Source of the DNA: Podarcis filfolensis
Taxonomy: Eukaryota
DNA length: 64,000 nt
Direction: 5' to 3' (one strand)
Assembly (NCBI GenBank): GCA_964270895.1
Contig: OZ185444.1
Shown here: positions 44,323 to 62,212 of the stretch, piece by piece
Position numbering within the stretch: the stretch's first letter is position 1
Layout: each line of letters starts with the position of its first letter
Program-made: the position numbers and the translations under genes
The notes under the pieces: model-generated
The model's database searches: none
Told to the model about the DNA's origin: nothing
Seen by the model: only the letters and a program-made list of their open reading frames with translations

Positions 44323-44553
44323 CAGTGGTACCTCTGGTTACGAACTTAATTCATTCCGGAGGTCCGTTCTTAACCTGAAACCTTTCTTAACCTGAGGTAC
44401 CACTTTAGCTAATGGGGCCTCCTACTGCCGCCACACGATTTCTGTTCTCATCCTGAGGTAAAGTTCTTAACCCGAGGTACTACTTCCGAGTTAGCGGAGT
44501 ATATAACCCGAAGTGTTTGTAACCCGAGGTGTTTGTAACCTGAGGTACCACTG
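44323..44553. mobile_element. Tc1/mariner-type MITE, copy 5 (inverted)
   Basis: Same TIRs and TA flanks. Confidence 0.9.
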
Positions 44554-44825
44554 TACATGCTGAGGGTGCGCTCCCCCCCCCATTTTCTTGCCCTGGATGG
44601 CATGGGGTGGGGAGTGAAGCAGGGATGGCTCTACCTTCCTTCTTTTCCTCGCTCAGGAGGACATTTTGATGGGGTGGAAAGAAGAAGGGAGAGGGCTGGC
44701 TTTCCTTTGTTTCTTGTATTTTGATCGAGTGTTGGGGAGGAAGAGGCAAAGGGGATGCCATCCCCACTTGCCTTAAGGCTTGTCTCATTTCTTTTCTGCC
44801 CAGAAGGGCATATTTATTTTTTAGT

Positions 44826-44826
<1 letters not shown>

Positions 44827-44867
<41 letters not shown>
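44827..44867. repeat. (TAA)n microsatellite (tail of adjacent MIR-like SINE)
   Basis: About 13 units; the adjacent ~44868-45050 resembles a minus-strand MIR-like SINE. Confidence 0.9.
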
Positions 44868-46271
44868 TCCTCCATGCAGCTCAAGGTGCTATACATGGTT
44901 CTTCCTGCATGTCATTATATCCTCATAGGTTGGGCTGAGAGAATGGCTGGCTGAAAATTGCCCAGCAAACTCCATCACTGAGTGGGAATTGAAACCTTCG
45001 TTTCCCAAGTCAACCAATCAGTTAGTTGATGCTTTGCTACATAGGAATAAAAGTATTCCCAGTTTTGTGTCAAGCCATGCCCTCATGACAGCCATTTTGC
45101 ATCAAGCCACGGCGCCTTGTGGCAGCCATTTTGTGGCTGGTGGCTTCAACATTCTCTCAAAATTCCAAAAATGTTGACGACCGCTGCTTAAGTAGCACAC
45201 TCAATGAGAATTGCTCCTCAGTCCTAACCCAGCTCTATTTCAGATGCAGTCTGATGTTGCATTGTTAACAGTTTCCATTTCTTTGCTATAAAATTGGTCC
45301 CTCATGGTTGGAAGCGCTGTCCAGTAAAGGTACTTCAGTTACATTCATTAGCAGTTTAGCTTACAGCCTCAACCGATTGGTTGAAAGCTCAACAAAACAA
45401 TGTTAAAATCACATAGTAGCAACCATGACCCTGGAATGCAAAGCACCTTAGATCTATGAGATTAATGGGCATTTTACTATAAATCAAGGTATAAAAATAA
45501 CTTAAAAATCAGGTTCACATGGGGAAGTCACACCTTTGGATGCATTCACGTAATGCATTTAAAGCACGTGGCCAGCGCCAAGTAGTTAATACTTGCTTTT
45601 TTAGTGTTAATGACTCAAAATGTCAGGTACACACTTAAGGGGCAGTGGCCAATGGAGTTTGTGGTACAAAACTGACTGAGGTTTTGAGAGGATACCAGAT
45701 TTTAGGGTTGGTAGCTAATGGCAGGCAGACATTTTCATTATTTATTTGTATTTATATCCTACACTTTCAGCACAAAATAATCCCAGGGCAGCTGTTACAA
45801 CATTTTGAAAACAATCCGACTATAAAAAGGAAGCACACGCACTGAAAACACAACAATGGTAACAGCAGCAGCATTGAATTAATGCAGCAACCACAAGAGG
45901 TTGGTCAAACACAATACAGTATTTTTAAATGTCTAAGGAAAATAAGAGGGGTTCATGAAGCACCAAAAGACACAGAGTGCCAGGCTAAGCTTCCTGGGGA
46001 AAGTAGAGTTGTTACAGTTGAACAGGTAACTCCCATGTCCCCTGATGCACCTCAGGTAGCAGAGACACCTGGAGAAGAGCTGTTTACAAAGATCTTAACA
46101 CATCAGCTGGTAGATGTGAGAAAAGGCAGCTCTAGAGGTAACCAGACCTAAAGCCCCATAGATCATTAAACAGCAAGTATCAGCACTTGCAATTATGCTT
46201 GGAAACAGGCAGCCATGATATGTTTGCTAGGCCTGGTGCCAGTTGGTGACTGTATGACGTGCTTTTATTTA

Positions 46272-46495
46272 CAGTGGTACCTCTGGTTATGAATGCTTCA
46301 GGTTACGAGCTCCGCTAACCCAAAAGTAGCTGCTCCAGGTTGTGAACTTTGCCCCTGGATGCGAACGGAAATTATGTGCTGGAGGCGCGCACAGTGGGAG
46401 GCCCTGTTAGCGAAAACGTGCCTCAGGATAAGAACTGTTTCAGTTTAAGAACAGATTTCCGGAACGAATTAAATTCGTAACCAGAGGTACCACTG
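46272..46495. mobile_element. Tc1/mariner-type MITE, copy 6 (diverged subfamily)
   Basis: TA|CAGTGGTACCTCTGGTTA...TAACCAGAGGTACCACTG|TA; core more diverged. Confidence 0.85.
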
Positions 46496-52325: not shown

Positions 52326-54696
52326 TTTTTTAAGGGGGAAAAATCCAACAATTCAATACAGTCAAAACTTTACATTTTTAAAACAAAAGCATTCTTTTTA
52401 AAAAGACACTTAGCAGAGAGACTTACATACCCAGACAATCCACCATCAGAGAGCTCATATCCTTAATTCTATCATTTAGAAAGTGTCATAAAAATGAATA
52501 CCAGGTAGGCTTTGAATATGAAAATGTGTGGTTTTTTTTCTTACCAGGAGTATCATTTTTAAGTCCTTTCAACAGTCATCCATTATTCATTTGTGTGTAC
52601 AGTAAAAAAAATGGGTAGGGATAGACATTTTTACCCTGATGTTTTTATAAATGGTAACGGTCCTACTATGTAGTGCCTTAAAATCCATGACTGAAAAGCA
52701 TTTTATATACTAATCTACACACTTTCACTCAGTACATACTGGAACACATCAAAGAGAAATGCAAATGTTGTACAGCAAAAACAAAGAGTAGTTTTGACCA
52801 AAAAAGGTCACATTTTATATTGCAGTCACATTTCCCCTGTTTAATGACAAATGGAGATAAACGCTCACCTGCTGCTCCAAATGAACAGAATGAACTAAAG
52901 ACAATGAAACTCCTGAGTAGTTAATCTCTCTAACTATGGAAAAATAACATAGCTACGCTGCAGGATTATCTGAGAACATATTTTTAAAGGGACACTGTAT
53001 TCAGCTATGTTATAAGCAGACCAAGCTTTCCATGCCAATGATAATGGAGTTTTAACAGCAGAAATAATGTCACTAAGCTGGAGAAATGCTAAGGGAAGTA
53101 TGTTGCATGCAACAGATGCCAATGTAGAATACTGACAAAAAAAATATATTTCCAAATTCATCTACCATTTTTTTATGGCTAAGCTACCATAAACCTAATG
53201 TATAGTGTGCTGAATGACAATTCACACCAGGCTGGTGCAAAGAGCACGTATCAACACAACATTCAGAGTAGTTTGCGTTTCTGAAATCATCATGTGCTTT
53301 TTGTCAACAGGAATTAATGCATGAGGATACTGCTAACTGGCAAGATAGGCTTGCCTCCAAACAAAACCAGTTGAGCATGATTATGAATAAACTCGAGTGA
53401 CCACAGAAATAGCTCCCATGCCAATTCTCAGTGTCTCTGCTTTTTGTGGTTTATTAAACATTTTGTAAATAGCATCACAAACCAAAGCTCTACAATAATT
53501 TAATTTTGCTTGATTTCTGCAGTTTTCTAAGAAACAAAATCCTCAAACCATGCTACATTAAAATATCTTAATGAGTTTGCAGAGGTTACAGTGAAAGCAC
53601 TTATTACTCCAGGAGGACTGAGATTAATATTAAAGTGTATTTACATATTTTGTCGTACAAAATACAGTATTCCAATAATCATGTTATTACTGTGTTTCAG
53701 ACACAAATGGAAAAACACTACACTTCTGCTATTCTGGACCCAACTAAACACCTTGCCAGCTGATGCTTCAAAGCACAAGTTAATTGTTATCCTAGTTCAG
53801 CAAAACAATACAAAGAACACCTCAGCCTCAGTTTTGTATTAGGAGGCTGCCTTGCTGATTAATTCAGATAAAGTTCACAAGACAGCACTACTAGGAACCA
53901 CAAGTAAGAACCATGTGCATTAATGGAGCAGTGGGGGAGGTTATGTGTGGGGAAAGATCTGTTATTAAGAGTCTGAAAAATAGAATTATTATATTCCCTC
54001 CTCAGCCTCACCTACTTTTCATTATAATTAGATAGTACAAGTTCACCAGAAAGATAATCAAGTTGACAAGCTTTCACATCAAAAGCAATTCTCATTATAA
54101 ATTAACTCAAATGAAGAGAATTAGTATCTAAACTTCACAATGAGAATGACTTTGAACTCAGCAATGCCTTGTCTCTTACAACGTTGCATCTTCCTTGCTG
54201 GGCATCATCCAGCCAGGAGAGCTTAAACTTGTGTTGTTTTCATAAGAAAGATGTTTAGCAAGGCGGGGCGGACATGCCAGGCATTGCCATTGTGAGGGAA
54301 TGTAGTTGCCATTAAGTATTTTTATAGGTTCTGTGACAAATTTGGGAAAAACAGATGTAATATATATGGAGTATGTTTTGGAGCCACAGGGGGAGAGAGG
54401 GTGTTTTATTCCGACTACACCCAGTGAAATTACTGGACCTAATTTAAGTGAGGTTCGTTAGTTTCAATGGGTCTATTTTGAGTAAAACATAGTTGCGTAG
54501 CTTAGTTGAGTAAAACATCCCGTGAATTCTTCCCTGCTTCTCAGCTTAATGAGATCTGCATACCAGTGAATTCAATGCTGGCTCAGAAATCAGCCTTGCC
54601 TTATTCTGTTAATGAAAAAAGGACAAAAGTGTTTTTTAAAGTGGAAAACTGTGTGTGTGTGTATTGTTCTGGTTGCCATCCTATCAATGCCACATG

Positions 54697-55043
54697 CAGC
54701 GGCGGAGCATATGCCTGCACTGCCCAGGGTGGGCGTGCTCCCGAGGGGGTCAGAACGCGGCACAGAGGGTGCCCTCCCAGGCGCAGGATAGCCACTCGGG
54801 TGCACAGAGCGGTGCACGCGCCCTGCAGCTGGGGGTGGAGGGAGCCACTGAGGGCGGACATTCCCCCCCCCCTCCAGTTGTCAAAACGAAGGGGGAAGGG
54901 GGGAATGCTGCCAGCAAAGTGGCGCAGCTCCCCCTTCCCCCGACGGCTTGGGGTAGGCTTCGGCAGCACACCGAATGTCACCCCCCTGAGCGAAGACACC
55001 TGGGGGAACCTGCCCCCATCGCACCTCCCTTCCTCCGCCCCTG
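54697..55043. mobile_element. GC-rich non-autonomous hAT element (347 bp)
   Basis: TIR CAGCGGCGGAGC / CCTCCGCCCCTG; perfect 8-bp TSD gccacatg at 54689-54696 and 55044-55051. Confidence 0.88.
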
Positions 55044-57884
55044 GCCACATGCACACCTGGCTTGGGCTGCAAACTTGCGAAACAGTTTTTTGATATTTTA
55101 TTTTCTTTGTTTTTAAAGAACATGCTTGAACAAGATGAAGCTTCTTCCAAACAAATCTCACAGGTCACATCTGTCTTCTCTCTCTAACTGGTTTTCAAAC
55201 TAAAAAAGGGACAGTAATCAGTTAAGAATTTTCGATTTGCCAGCATTGTCACGGCTATGCACACTGCACAGAGGCAAACCTCAGATCTGTCACAGACTGT
55301 GTGCTCCATAATGAGGTGCAGTTAATCAAGGCTGCCTGGAGATGTGTCCATGGATGCCTGAGGCTCCAGCATTGCAGGTGAAGCCAAGCAGGTGTGGACC
55401 TGATCAATTATTTGGATGGGAGACTATTGGGGGCATCCCAGCTAGATGGGTGGGGTATAAATAATAAAATTATTCTAATTATAATTATGTATACGCAGGA
55501 TATAAAATTATATATTAAGTGCGTCTGCGTGATGTATGTTTGCAAACACATGGTTATCACACTCACAAAATTTAGGTGAGCATTTAAAAAGGCAGATCTA
55601 AAAGGGTGCACACATGAAATACATGAAGTAGATATTTAGCTGAAGAGTATATGAATACTAGTGAATCAGTGTACACATTTTTCCAGGAAAGCAGAGGTGC
55701 ATATACAAAAAGATAGATAATGCGCCTTTTTTTCCTTAGCAAAGGTTCAGATTTGAAAGATTTCTGTTACTCTAGAAGTTGAAACAATTCAGTTTTGTAT
55801 AGCTGCCTTTAGTGGGTGAATCAGCCTCAACATGAGTATATGTGTTAAAACATCCCCAAATTCTGGGGGTTTTTTTGTTTTTGGGGTGGGGGTAGAAAAA
55901 ACACTGAACTAGATGCTTATGGCCCAGAGGTGTTTAGGAATTCTGTAAAAAAACAACACCATAGATTCTAGTATGTCTTAACTATTCAAAATATATTTGC
56001 TCTTAACAATTTTACAGTATCTCTGTAAGCTTTAGCTGCTGGTTCTCTTTTACTGCACCTGTTATCTTGATACCTGACAGAAGGACTGCCCACTAGGGAG
56101 TACTAGAAGCAAGCTCTACATCTAGAATACTTGGTTATTCGGCACAATACAGCACAACACAGCACAGAAAGGGAAAGTGCCAATGAATATCTTTTTTTAA
56201 AAAACCCACCTGCAAAGACATTGGGAATTTATACAAAACAGCAACCAAGATTAATATCATAGGTTTAATATAAAAACTTATAAAGGCTTCAGCACCCACA
56301 GCACTAAATATATGCCTCCATTACTTCTTGAATGAATGATACAAAAGTAATGAATAAGGGAAAACTCCACCAAAATTTCACATGAAACCTGCACAGAGAT
56401 TGATCACAAAGAACCACAAATTATCCCTTAAACCTAAATCATTGCTCTAGTTGCAAAGTAGAAATCTCACATGACTATTAAAGAATGATTAAAAACCAAT
56501 AAACAGAGTTAAATGCCTATGCTAAGCCTGTACAATGAAATGAAATCTTTAAGAAAAGGAAGATCAGCTTCTAAATTATTATTTAGAAATTATTATTATT
56601 ATTCAATTAATTTCATCTATGGATGAAATTCAGTTAGGGGGATATTTTATTTCAATCTCTCTCAAGGGGATGATCATGTACATTAAGATTACCATAACAA
56701 AATTCTCTATTATATAGATCATTTGCTTTTGAAGATTTTCTTTCTTGTCCACAATATTTATTAAAAAATTAAAAGTTGTTAACCCTTGGATCTTCAGTGG
56801 CATGTTGATAGTAACTGGGTAACCATAAAGAGATTACTGTTCCCCTCAAACTGTTCCCAGCAAGGTCTGTAATCCTACAGATCACACTCTGGTCATTCCA
56901 TTATATAATTAAACAGCAGTATGTAGAAGAGTTTGCATACTTATAGCAGGCATCCTGCACTATTTCTTTGGACAAATTAATGTTAAACGTTAGTGCAAAT
57001 TAAGAACATTATTCTCTACTGTTATCACTATATATTGGTTACCAAGATGAAGAGGAAGGTGGAAGACCTGGTTATGCTAATGATATATTATCTACCTCCC
57101 ATACCAAAGAAATAATGCATTTTAAAGAAACAAAGTTGTAAAGTCACATGATGTTTAATGTGTCTCATTTGTTTATCCTGGGAAGAGTATTACAACTGCT
57201 TCATCTTCCTACACAAAGGTACACGTAAAGTTAAACATATAACCTTTGCATCGTGTTGTACAACACATGCAAATCATCGAAGTGACTAACCAAAGCACAT
57301 TAAATGTGGGAATTCATATTCTATTTCAGTTGATTTGTGCTATAAAATGGCTGGAGAACTAAAATTATTAACAGCTATCATGAAGAGCCATATATTACAT
57401 TTCTAATGTAACACACACAGGTATTGGAAATCTGGCTCCAACTGCAAGTTATAAGGGTATGCAGCACATCATTTGGATTAGTACTACAATTCTGATATTA
57501 TTTTCTTTCTGTGTGTATTTAATCGTTATACCAATCTTCTCCAACTTTTGAGAGATTCTATAAAGAGCCCACAGTCAATTTTACTAAGTAATATGCACAC
57601 TGGTGCATTAATTGCAAACAATTAAAATAGTACAGGCAATTTCTTAATTTTGTGGGGATTACGCTTTGAAAACAGCAGAAAATCAGTGTTTTGCAAAATG
57701 TAATCTACTAGCATAGTTGTGTTGGGACTTTCCTGTCAAGTCCAACTTCTGAATCTGAAACAGCAATCTTGAAGCCTCTTGTGCTAAGCAGGGATTGCCA
57801 GCATTGAACTGTACACCAAAAAAATCCCGTGTTGCAAACAGAGCACTCTAAACAACAACAAGCAACACGTTGGCTAATAATGTA

Positions 57885-58058
57885 CTGACAATATTTTTAT
57901 AACATTACACTGTTTCAAAATTCATAAACAGAAAACATGTGCATGGAGTCACAAATTAATAAGAATTGAATAAATGGAACATCCATGCACATGACTCCAT
58001 GCACATGTTTTCTGTTTATGAATTTTGAAACAGTATAACGTTATAAAAATATTGTCAG
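57885..58058. repeat. 67-bp inverted repeat with 40-nt spacer
   Basis: 57885-57951 is the reverse complement of 57992-58058 at 65/67 positions. Confidence 0.95.
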
Positions 58059-61000
58059 CATTGAACTGTAGGCACAATAGTGCCTCTGAGGTCTTCCCAT
58101 GGTTCCGACAGGCCAAATGAGCCCCTCTTACTTTCTGCCCTTTTAATGAGCTGGAATGCATAGAGCTGAATGAGGAAATTGGAAGCATGATGCTTATTTT
58201 CACTTTCTCTTTTAGCGCCATGTCCTTTGCAAGGCCCAGAATAATCATTCTGGATAAGATCACTTGGAAAAGTGATCTTCTTTCTGTGGGGAGGCTGATC
58301 TGGCTGAGGGAAGTGGCCAGAAGGGATGGTGCACTTGTTCAAAATTTCAAAGCCTAAAAAAGTTAGCAACCTCTGTGCTATGCTTTCCTAATCAACTGAT
58401 GGAAGCCTGCTAACCCAGTCATTAGTCCTATGACAAATTGGTGTGGGTTTTATCCAGTTTTGAAATATATCTATTCTTGACACATTTCAAGTTTCATGTA
58501 GCTCATACTCAGGGTGTAACTTCTACAGAATTGAAATGCCCTATTTCCACAAGCTATTTTGCTGTCCCTAGGGTCTAAGCAACAGGTTCTGCTACCACAT
58601 AGGCATGCATCTGATGGGATATTCCAACTGTGCTATGTCTGATGCTTCAGATTAATGAGTCCAATGCTCATCATACTATGTTCAGGCACTCAAGTGAAAT
58701 TCAGAAATCTTTAAGGGAAAAATAGTAGGGGAAAACAGCATAAACGTTGCTTATTTTATTTCTAACATGTACAGGACCAGGTAGAAGTGAAAATCAGCAA
58801 TTATTCCGTAATTATTCAGTTGGGGCAATCAGAAGGCCACCCCAATTTTGATAAGGGACTTGGGGCAATTTGTTCAGCAAGAAAAAGTAAACTAGATGTT
58901 GAACTTGCATCTTCTAGAAGATAGGCAACAGCAGATAAAATGAGTAACTGAGTGAATAACTGAGTCACCCTACTATCGCAACCTGTCCTTTTATTATACT
59001 GCTCCCTCTTCATTACACATCTAGGTTTATGAAAGTAAGGAAACAGAAATCTCTTAGGATTATTACAAGGAGTAGATTGTGAAAATGCATCAGCATGCCA
59101 TCACAATCATTCTATTGTCAGTCAGCAAGCTTAAGAAAAAGTGCTAATTTCAGAAAGTGAGTGTCAGCTTTAATCAGCCGAGAAAATAAGGTGCATCTAA
59201 CTTGCTAGCATTTGTTAAGATATAGTGCATCTTGGGGTACGTGTTATTTTCCATTACTTCTATTTTAATTGATATGTTGGTTGTATAGTGTACCAAAACT
59301 ATTTCTTTTTAATCTGTTTTCCACATATGCTGTTTCTGTTCCAATAGTACAAGATACAATAGATTAACAGAATTTAGCTGCAATATTGATATCCATTCTA
59401 AAGCACAGAACAGATATGAAAAAGAAACACAGAAGGAAATCTTGAATAATTATAGTTATATTCCCTTAATACTTGCCCCTTCCTCCCAATAAAGGATCAC
59501 CACTAATTATTCAAACTGAACTCAAGGACACGAGCACCAAGTGTCATTGAAAAGAGTTAATAACTGTACTGCATGTTGTGGGTACAAGGAAAAATAGCAG
59601 TACAACAGAAATGTACCCTTAGAGACCTTGGTCTTTTCATCATGCTCAGCCCTTGGGTAGTTCAGAGGGAGGTACTTGCAGGCAAGCAGGGTCATCATCA
59701 GTTGTGGAACACCTCACATCTTTCACTATTCATTCTGATGGCAGGTGGTTTCATGTGTAGTTTTTAGTTTCTTTGTGATTTTAAGAGTCTTTAAAGTTGC
59801 ATCACTCGGAATCGGATAAGTCACTTTAAACAAAGCAAAGCAAGAATATGACTATTTATAAAACAGCATATTGTTACATTCACTCTCAGGGATGTTACCA
59901 ATTCCCTATTATAAAGGAAACAGACTACTTGGGGAGCAGTACACTAGCACTGACAGTAAAACCACTCCGCTGAGTCAAGGTATCACGAGAAGGAACAACA
60001 ATTCTAGGAAATTTATTTTAACTGCACAAAATTAAACTGCTTCCCATTTCTATCAATAAGCCATGGTAGAGCTTTTCCAACTGTTGATCCATACCCAATA
60101 CCTGGTGTTTTTTAACACTACTAACGTGACCTCCCTTTAAAAAGTGGGTGGGTGGGCACAAAGGAGGACTGTTACTGGCTGCAGCACATCTAGATTATAT
60201 TATCCTAAAACAGCAGCAATGTCCCAAACATTGCCTTTAAGAAAAACCTCCATTCTGCCTGAAAGCTAGTTCAGCATTCAGACATTTTTCTCTCCTTGAT
60301 CATTAAGAAAGCGTATTACATGCTGAAAAAAATTGCTACAAGGGGATGTGTGCACCTGAACTGGCTCTGCTAAAATTCAAGGTACCCACTTACTTCTGTA
60401 TTACTGACATTCTTATGTATCCTTGCAACCAATGGCCTTGAAGAAGGTCTCCAGGATTACACCAATGTATGCTGCTTTAGCTGGAGGAGGTTATTAGCAG
60501 CTAACAGCAGCTATGGGGAAAGCCTTGTGTGTTCTTTTCAAGATAAGCACTAAAATATGCTTGAGACATGACATGCAGCTGTCAGGGAAACCATATGCAA
60601 GGCAACCCAAAAGGATGAATAAATTAAATAGCTTGCAGCAAGGTAATGTGCCCCACCCACCTCTTACATTGGTCAGGTCAGAACCAACACTGTAGCAAAG
60701 CATCACTTTAATGGGTCTAAAGCAAGCTCTCCCAGGACTAATATTACCCTACAACTCTAGGTCACAAATATTGTGGCTCATTACTTTTTAATAAAAATAA
60801 GAATATACTCCTTTGAAGAATTAAGTGCAGGAATTTACTATAATGAATTGAACCTGTAATTTAAGTGAATATGGTTATTTTCTCAACAGCCACTCATATT
60901 AGTTAAAAAAACTAATGCAAGTGATTTGGAGACAAATTGCTTAAATGAAAGTAAAAAAATCCAAATCAATAAAGAGGAAATGCTTCCATTTTACAATATG

Positions 61001-61072
61001 CAAAGGAATTTATAAATTTTTTCAGAAGTAATACCCCCACAGCAGTGTTGTTTGGACAGATACACAGCTGAT

Positions 61073-61160
61073 AAGGTTGCAATCCAAAGCCCACTTATTT
61101 GTAAGTCCAATTGCATTCAACAGGACTTACTTCTGAGTAGTCACATTTAGGATTGAAGCC
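61073..61160. mobile_element. Short palindromic MITE-like repeat
   Basis: aaggttgcaatcc...taggattgaagcc; same family as 13413-13500. Confidence 0.55.
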
Positions 61161-61671
61161 AAAGCCTCATTTCTGCCCAAAAGAATCAAAAGGCCCAGAA
61201 CTGAAAAGAAGATTCATACTTGTTCTCAAAGTAAGAGAAAACGATCAGTCCTGCACATCATATTATTTTATATGTATAACTTGGAAAAGGGAGCAATTAC
61301 AAAATTATTTCAGCATGATTCCTTCCACATTATATAATTTGTTTTAAAGGAAAATACTTTTGAACCATTTGCCTTCCATTCCAGACATGACAGCAGTAAA
61401 ACACCTGCCAGTCTAGCAACATAGACAGATTTATTCCTCAAGTTATCAAATTAGTGTTATTTGATTAGAAACACCACTCTTAAAATGTGTTAAATTTGTT
61501 TTTTAAAATATTAAAAATTGGCATATTGCAACACAAGGATCAGAAAGCGCCTGACCAAGTTGTGTCAGAAGAAGTGGATCCTGTTCAGGGTTACAGAACA
61601 ACCGAGCTACAGACATTAGTCTCTATTGAAACAGAGCAAGCCAAGGAACAAAGTAAGGGAAAAGGATTTGC

Positions 61672-61887
61672 TTACAAGGGTCCATATCTGCTCTCATATT
61701 TAGAGACAATGTTCTTGCATTTCCCCATTTCCTTTCGCAACTCTGCCACCTCGGTCCTCAGAGCTGTATTCTCCTTCTCCAGAAAGGCAGCTCGGACTGT
61801 GATCTGGTTCTCTTTCAGGCGACGAGCATCACGAGATCGTTTGGCTGCCACATTATTCTTCTTCCGCCTAGTCCAATATTTTTCATC
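61672..61887 (-). CDS. TEF: Thyrotroph embryonic factor (PAR bZIP), last coding exon
   Basis: tctctctag| then [74 protein letters not shown] (basic region plus leucine zipper); synteny with TOB2 supports TEF over DBP/HLF. Confidence 0.96.
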
Positions 61888-62212
61888 CTAGAGAGAAAAT
61901 AATCAGTTCAATAGTGAAATACTTCAGGTATCAAAAAGTACCTACCATATGGCCTCTTCTTATGACCAGCTATACAACCCAGCCTAGCAAGAGTTATCTA
62001 TGCCCTAGCAACTTCCAGGAAAATTGCTGTGTCTCATATGTGGGGACTACTAAAGAAATCTGGCACAGGAAACAATCTGCTAGATTGAACAGTCCTGATC
62101 AACAGACAGAACACATCTTAAAACAGCTCCAGTGGTTACCATCCACTTCAACAGCTGGGTTTACTTATATAACAGGATTTAGTGGGACATACTGTAATTT
62201 TGCTTTATTCGA

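Follow-up and report, generated by a model that had tools for sequence, protein, structure and literature searches.

A 67-bp hairpin in the TEF 3'UTR of wall lizards, probably left by a fold-back retro-insertion

The hairpin and the TEF transcript around it

The stretch of DNA analysed here, 64 kb long and called the window in what follows, carries TEF on its minus strand with the stop codon at 61672-61674. Genomically 3.6 kb downstream of this stop lies an inverted repeat with two 67-nt arms, 57885-57951 and 57992-58058, that are separated by a 40-nt spacer and complementary at 65 of 67 positions (97%), the divergence between the arms amounting to 1.5-3%. These are the arms, the 67-bp stem, the 40-nt loop and the distance of about 3.6 kb past the TEF stop that a first-pass annotation of the sequence had proposed, and each was recovered at the same coordinates. 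It had also described two mismatches that change character with the strand, which is what is found: the non-complementary positions, 57904A/58039C and 57908C/58035A, are both A-C mismatches on the plus strand and both G-U pairs on the minus, TEF-sense strand. Folding both strands, the check suggested at that stage, gave -109.9 kcal/mol (z = -19.1 against shuffles) with an uninterrupted stem for the minus-strand RNA and -98.3 kcal/mol (z = -17.8) for the plus-strand RNA, whose stem is broken by the two internal A-C mismatches. The stem is 72% A+U over its 67 bp. An inverted repeat of this kind is far beyond chance, and the window holds no second short-spacer inverted repeat of its quality.

Public sequencing runs from four organisms, denoted A to D with A being that of the window genome, contain this stretch of the TEF 3'UTR. 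Contigs of B and C (DNA) and of D (probably RNA), as well as the raw stranded RNA-seq reads of D, were aligned to 55650-61640, and the starts of contigs were interpreted with the Logan k-mer length of 31. In the RNA-seq of D, 55650-59849 is covered about 60- to 240-fold outside dips, with essentially all first mates on the plus strand, and 112 reads have loose ends at 59823 that match, in reverse complement, the final 30 nt of the TEF coding exon. Because these splice reads carry the end of a TEF exon, the orientation of the library identifies the RNA as minus-strand, that is, TEF sense. The donor of the corresponding intron, GTAAG at 61675-61671, overlaps the TEF stop codon, and its acceptor (...tttaaAG, with the AG at 59825-59824) has a pyrimidine tract; RNA depth in D is only about 10x inside 59850-61640, and the bins immediately past the acceptor (59450-59849) have 115-135x. 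The 3' part of the TEF transcript is therefore divided as follows.

55650-59823, minus strand: terminal TEF exon (3'UTR) containing the hairpin, with its 3' end beyond 55650 (D RNA-seq, stranded coverage of about 100-240x)
59824-61675, minus strand: intron of 1852 nt, removed in most TEF transcripts of the D sample (depth and splice reads)

With splice reads joining the TEF stop codon to 59823, the hairpin lies in a terminal 3'UTR exon, about 1.74 kb into it. Any role in RNA had been made to depend on transcription of the region, and this is borne out by the stranded reads of D, which run in the TEF sense with the hairpin inside the TEF 3'UTR. Read by eye, the spliced frame would have FDLSDSE in place of the final Leu and stop at 59804-59802; on this reading there would be an unannotated terminal TEF exon and an alternative C-terminus. 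Just downstream of 55650 in the TEF sense, 54500-55170 is a GC-rich island in which both strands have long open frames, in several phases; it may be a CpG island or the promoter of an adjacent transcript, or else belong to the very long TEF terminal exon. At the other end of the region, 61050-61249 is a SINE-like repeat at about 36 times the single-copy contig depth in B and C, with loose ends carrying ...GGGAGTAAGCCCCACTGAA..., and one contig in each of B and C skips 60805-61125 (321 nt), anchored by only 22 nt; the skip may come from a polymorphic insertion or from a paralog.

Several look-ups concerned more distant organisms. Exact look-ups of five window ORFs for orthologous DNA in more distant lizards gave no match, as did a word search with the ORF adjoining the hairpin and a scan of one metagenome for a 27-mer of the arm. 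Matches to the ORF antisense to the last TEF exon came solely from distant vertebrates, whose alignment is confined to the coding exon (82%).

Sister species and the two arm differences

Contigs of B and C bridge the left flank into the left arm, and other contigs bridge the right arm into the right flank. The loop is present in contigs of both at 100% identity (B: 57937-58035; C: 57922-58021). At least B and C, both sister species, have the orthologous hairpin, which is therefore not private to the window genome. An assembly artefact was also considered and is ruled out by the independent B and C contigs that span the loop and both junctions. In the flanks, A and B diverge by about 0.8-1.0% (18/2276 nt and 34/3409 nt).

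The two arm differences have different histories. At 57908 a T is present in all contigs of B (10) and C (14), paralogs included, in the contig of D and in 28 of 28 D reads, and the C of the window genome is a private T>C change that gives the sense RNA a G-U pair where it had A-U. For the other position the evidence comes from contig ends. In B as in C, the contigs of the right flank start at 58009, 30 nt short of 58039, and with k = 31 such a start makes it likely that the 57904/58039 mismatch is common to A, B and C, as deduced from the contig starts rather than read directly. The G-U pattern consists of two plus-strand T>C changes, one probably common to the three species and one private.

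The pairing of both positions on one strand had been given about a 1-in-4 probability of arising by chance, and this estimate was correct: with the composition of the arms and equal transition rates, the chance that both transitions are wobble-compatible in the sense RNA is 0.235. That chance, taken with the private nature of the 57908 change, rules out sense-strand-only pairing as a signal. In mammalian transcribed regions, Green et al. reportedly found in 2003 that sense-strand A>G exceeds T>C, and if a mammal-like A>G bias holds here the chance of sense-compatible transitions is above 0.235. At the flank rate about 1.5 changes between A and B are expected in the 174 nt of the hairpin, and at least 1 is observed; by this count the hairpin appears to show no sign of constraint, the comparison having no power to detect compensation. 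Nor does selection on pairing seem to be indicated, the argument being a neutral-looking rate over a very short time. Compared with the window, D has a 9-nt insertion, GGCGAGGGG, after 58152, and an insertion of 11 nt, AATGTGCCCAC, follows 58349 in B, C and D; the TEF 3'UTR therefore evolves freely by indels.

Anatomy and likely origin of the insertion

The arm belongs to a repeat family. Summed contig depth over 57850-58049 is 3371 in B and 552 in C, where single-copy sequence stands at about 121 and 19 (about 28-fold), and the arm sequence itself reaches about 28-35 times the single-copy contig depth in B and C, with 10-14 distinct contigs per species covering 57908. The paralogous contigs are 90-95% identical over 54-68 nt, within 57844-57940 in B and C. 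Their homology extends outside the left arm, as alignments start at 57844-57855 in both species and the loose end of a paralog at 57836 is a diverged version of 57816-57835. Many paralog alignments end at 57938-57940, and two paralogous contigs of B cross the left arm as far as 57976 and then continue into unrelated sequence, without a right arm. These contigs suggest that the family sequence spans roughly 57816-57976 and beyond and that the right arm is a locus-specific inverted copy. Because the family sequence is contiguous on both sides of the left arm, the left arm is taken as the original copy.

Copy number and flanking homology point to a multi-copy mobile element as the source of the hairpin. 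The non-transposon structure implied by the first-pass annotation does not hold, the arm being multi-copy and the insert having a flank of 15-20 bp that resembles a target-site duplication (TSD). Within the 64-kb window no other copies of the family were found with blastn (word size 7) or nhmmer, and the flanking ORFs gave no transposase or reverse transcriptase (RT) remnants with Pfam. A poly(A) or recognisable LINE/SINE 3' tail is absent, the element end reading ...GGGATTTTTTTGGTG. No hammerhead ribozyme family was detected by cmscan of 55000-62000 at E<=1, and the fragment may exclude that part of an element.

Three contigs of C appeared to place a family boundary at 57881. This was rejected, as the boundary is the end of a Tc2-like MITE, AACCCGAGGTACCAC, which lies nested within a paralog, at the TA dinucleotide 57883-57884; AACCCGAGGTACCAC matches the abundant Tc2-like MITE TIRs at 1513-1550 and 44519-44558 in the window. 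Inverted pairs of Tc2-like MITE ends (TACAGTGGTACCTCGGGTTAC...) occur at 1506-2817 and 44519-46306, and a 220-nt inverted repeat, 90% identical with a spacer of 825 nt, is found at 1541-1760/2586-2805.

The insert is bracketed by a direct repeat, ATTGYCAGCATTGAACTGTA, at 57794-57813 and 58051-58070, 19/20 identical and enclosing an insert of 237-245 bp. A TSD had been said to be missing at this locus, which was wrong. The two copies, ATTGCCAGCATTGAACTGTA on the left and ATTGTCAGCATTGAACTGTA on the right, differ by C at 57798 and T at 58055, the right copy having the base of the element, and the sequences outside them are unrelated. The outer 8 nt of the right arm, ATTGTCAG, are also the first 8 nt of the right copy of the repeat, and compared with the target, ATTGCCAG, this arm end matches at 7 of 8 positions, a microhomology located at the start of the duplicated target. 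In the centre of the hairpin the family sequence ends at 57976 and is followed by a 7-nt filler, GGAACAT, and then by the 11-mer CCATGCACATG out of register; the 11-mer stands twice at the junction, at 57983-57993 and 57997-58007. Along the plus strand the insertion reads:

57794-57813: left direct-repeat copy ATTGCCAGCATTGAACTGTA, read as target-site duplication (19/20 against 58051-58070)
57814-57884, minus strand: probable 3' part of the element outside the hairpin, ending ...GGGATTTTTTTGGTG beside the left repeat (B and C paralogs)
57885-57951, minus strand: left arm, the 3' arm in TEF-sense RNA and the likely original copy (10-14 contigs per species, about 30-35x)
57952-57976, minus strand: part of the loop matching the family, up to the putative 5' truncation of the first cDNA (two B paralogs)
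57977-57991: junction, comprising the GGAACAT filler and the first copy of CCATGCACATG, read as polymerase slippage or template switching (pattern positions)
57992-58058, minus strand: right arm, the 5' arm in TEF-sense RNA and an apparent inverted copy of 57885-57951 (inverted-repeat comparison)
58051-58070: right direct-repeat copy, with its first 8 nt overlapping the arm end (microhomology at the putative internal priming site)

Given this arrangement, the hairpin is probably the folded-back 5' end of a short 5'-truncated retroelement that was inserted by target-primed reverse transcription (TPRT). As a candidate class for the element, a non-LTR or Penelope-type retroelement is the most likely. 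Under this scenario, the element would have inserted in minus orientation into the terminal TEF 3'UTR exon ahead of the divergence of the sampled congeners. A nick in the plus strand after 57813 would have provided the primer for a first cDNA from the 3' end of the element (57814 to about 57976), and the staggered 3' end of the bottom strand, ...GCTGGCAAT-3', would have annealed to an internal site in the RNA, AUUGUCAG, with 7 of 8 positions matching and the eighth a G-U. From this annealed end a second, inverted cDNA would have been primed, which is the putative source of the right arm (58058 down to 57992). The second cDNA would then have slipped once, copying the 11-mer twice, and been joined to the first through the 7-nt filler. 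The outcome would be a target duplication of 15-20 bp together with a 67-bp inverted duplication and a 40-nt loop. If there was a single insertion, the site before it would have read ...ATTGCCAGCATTGAACTGTA followed directly by GGCACAATAG (GGCAC… from the junction on).

L1 insertions made by 'twin priming' were reportedly described by Ostertag and Kazazian in 2001. Insertions left by twin priming are flanked by TSDs and contain a 5' cDNA in inverted orientation, often with overlap between the two cDNAs (PMC12016303). The proposed events share with it a TSD of 12-20 bp and the combination of a cDNA primed at the 3' end with an internally primed, inverted one, and also microhomology at the priming site, overlap of the cDNAs and an imprecise inner junction (PMC12016303). 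They differ from it in that the hairpin locus has neither poly(A) nor L1 sequence, and in that an overlap of 67 nt, much greater than the median of 12 bp reported for L1 twin priming, gives a hairpin and not a simple 5' inversion. Penelope-like elements often bear an adjacent inverted 5'-truncated copy (PMC8557442), and their insertions resemble the locus in being short and 5'-truncated, in having an inverted partial copy at the 5' end, in folding back and in lacking poly(A) (PMC8557442). Unlike in those insertions, no hammerhead motif was detected here and the inverted copy is without the outer 71 nt of the element 3' end, whereas two full TPRT events would put the element 3' end on both copies.

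Parts of the evidence count against a fold-back retro-insertion. The element seems to have no poly(A), LINE or SINE tail and no linked RT-encoding relative, and the long cDNA overlap is itself unlike L1 twin priming. The difference at 57798/58055 would further require trimming of the primer, mismatch repair, or a TSD of 15 nt with 3 nt of microhomology. If the proposal is right, the locus would be an unusually legible record of a fold-back retro-insertion, in which the target duplication, the microhomologous internal priming site and the slipped junction can all still be read.

Two other origins were weighed. It is conceivable, though doubtful, that the repeat was inserted unfolded and that a later event in the DNA, replication fork template switching of the FoSTeS/MMBIR type with microhomology at the junctions, produced the inverted duplication. 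The filler, the doubled 11-mer and the 8-nt outer near-homology are typical of serial switching by any polymerase, and the 1.5-3% difference between the arms implies that the duplication is young. However, template switching by itself does not give a flank duplication of 12-20 nt around the whole insert, including the 71 nt that are not folded, and it calls for two separate events where one suffices. That same direct repeat is also left unexplained, over its 20 nt, by a Tc1/mariner-type MITE, an origin we regard as unlikely, in which the 174 bp would be a unit with 67-bp TIRs starting CTGACAAT and a TA duplication, and the copies in the sister species would be other hairpins. Such a unit would fit the TA of the left flank (57883-57884), the TIR-like arms, the multi-copy arm sequence and a minus-strand flank, TACAGTTCAATG, loosely like Tc1-like ends, and Tc1/mariner-type MITEs are common in the window's genome; the right flank, however, is CA (58059-58060) and not TA. 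Moreover, the paralogs share 30-70 nt outside the left arm (57816/57844-57884), which is unexpected for the terminus of a MITE, two of them cross the left arm to 57976 with no right arm, and the sole apparent boundary, at 57881, is that of the nested Tc2-like MITE.

The predicted duplex and its possible functions

Because the terminal exon is transcribed in the TEF sense, a duplex is expected in TEF mRNA, and by the predicted folding this mRNA should form a 67-bp AU-rich one. A length of 67 bp suffices for promiscuous ADAR editing and for dsRNA-binding proteins. In human 3'UTRs, inverted Alu pairs (IRAlus) undergo ADAR editing and are binding sites for Staufen, PKR and paraspeckle proteins. 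As a functional analogy and not a homology, the hairpin is like IRAlus in consisting of transposon-derived inverted repeats in an expressed 3'UTR that are predicted to form long intramolecular dsRNA; it differs in being a single 67-bp fold-back insertion in a lizard, as opposed to two independent elements of about 300 bp. On this analogy the hairpin is most likely passenger dsRNA, expected to behave like an inverted-Alu pair. The earlier proposal of an ADAR/Staufen substrate stands in so far as the hairpin is transcribed in the TEF sense and is a plausible substrate.

The RNA reads of D have irregularities at the hairpin. Depth dips to 35x over the hairpin bin, about threefold, and to 12x at 56450-56649, and some RNA fragments begin at 57996 or end at 57937. 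RT/PCR bias at hairpins, sequence differences in D or processing could each account for the dip at the hairpin and for the fragment ends. At 56450-56649, where TEF-sense RNA falls from about 60-90x to 12x, lies another repeat with about fourfold depth in B; because this repeat dips too, dips over repeats are not specific to the hairpin. Among the differences listed between D RNA and the reference, which is the genome of another animal, T>C (the signature of A-to-I on the minus strand) occurs 23 times and the other transitions 16-18 times.

Could the hairpin be a selected element of TEF RNA, either a lineage-specific Dicer/Drosha small-RNA precursor or an ADAR/Staufen site in which only G-U changes have been tolerated? 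We consider this very unlikely. Transcription in the TEF sense at about 35-100x, the threefold dip and the fragment ends at 57996/57937 would be in keeping with it, but the dip recurs at 56450-56649 and RT/PCR captures hairpins poorly. Likewise, each of the two arm differences still allows a wobble pair in the sense RNA, but two sense-compatible transitions have a probability of about 0.24 by chance, or higher with a sense-strand A>G bias, one of them is private to the window genome, and substitutions have accumulated at the flank rate. Nor is there a clear excess of T>C among the differences listed, with 23 as opposed to 16-18 for the other transitions. Weak matches to miRNA models exist, yet a long perfect stem without a flanking single-stranded basal junction is not a Drosha-type substrate.

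Those matches came from cmscan of 55000-62000 at E<=1, in which the best Rfam miRNA families, mir-2566 and mir-556, scored 37.9 and 37.6 bits against gathering thresholds of 86 and 84. Membership in a miRNA family is ruled out by scores of about 38 bits, far below 84-86. A typical miRNA precursor has an imperfect stem of about 35 bp and gives discrete mature reads. With animal pri-miRNAs such as mir-2566 and mir-556 the hairpin has in common that it lies within a Pol II transcript; its stem, however, is twice as long and essentially perfect, and its conservation is seen in congeners only. The idea of a Drosha-type miRNA precursor in the first-pass annotation finds no support in the Rfam scores or in the perfect 67-bp stem, which is unlike that of an animal pri-miRNA.

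We rate it as highly improbable that wall lizards have recruited a young fold-back insertion into service as a dsRNA switch in TEF mRNA. In that case the 67-bp stem would tune TEF output through ADAR editing, Staufen-type decay or endo-siRNA, and in vivo processing would lie behind the threefold dip and the fragment ends (57937 and 57996). TEF is a circadian PAR-bZIP factor and a clock-output gene. Inverted repeats made by transposons in 3'UTRs are a well-known class, of which the primate IRAlus are examples, and the hairpin adds one more case to it; the finding opens no long-standing question. A perfect 67-bp duplex in an expressed clock-output gene would offer a natural reptile test case for the handling of dsRNA by ADAR, PKR and Staufen. 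Elsewhere in the 3'UTR, on the plus strand and so antisense to TEF, 56656-56738 matches the mir-144 model at 23 bits (gathering threshold 60, E = 0.08), which is most likely a chance resemblance.
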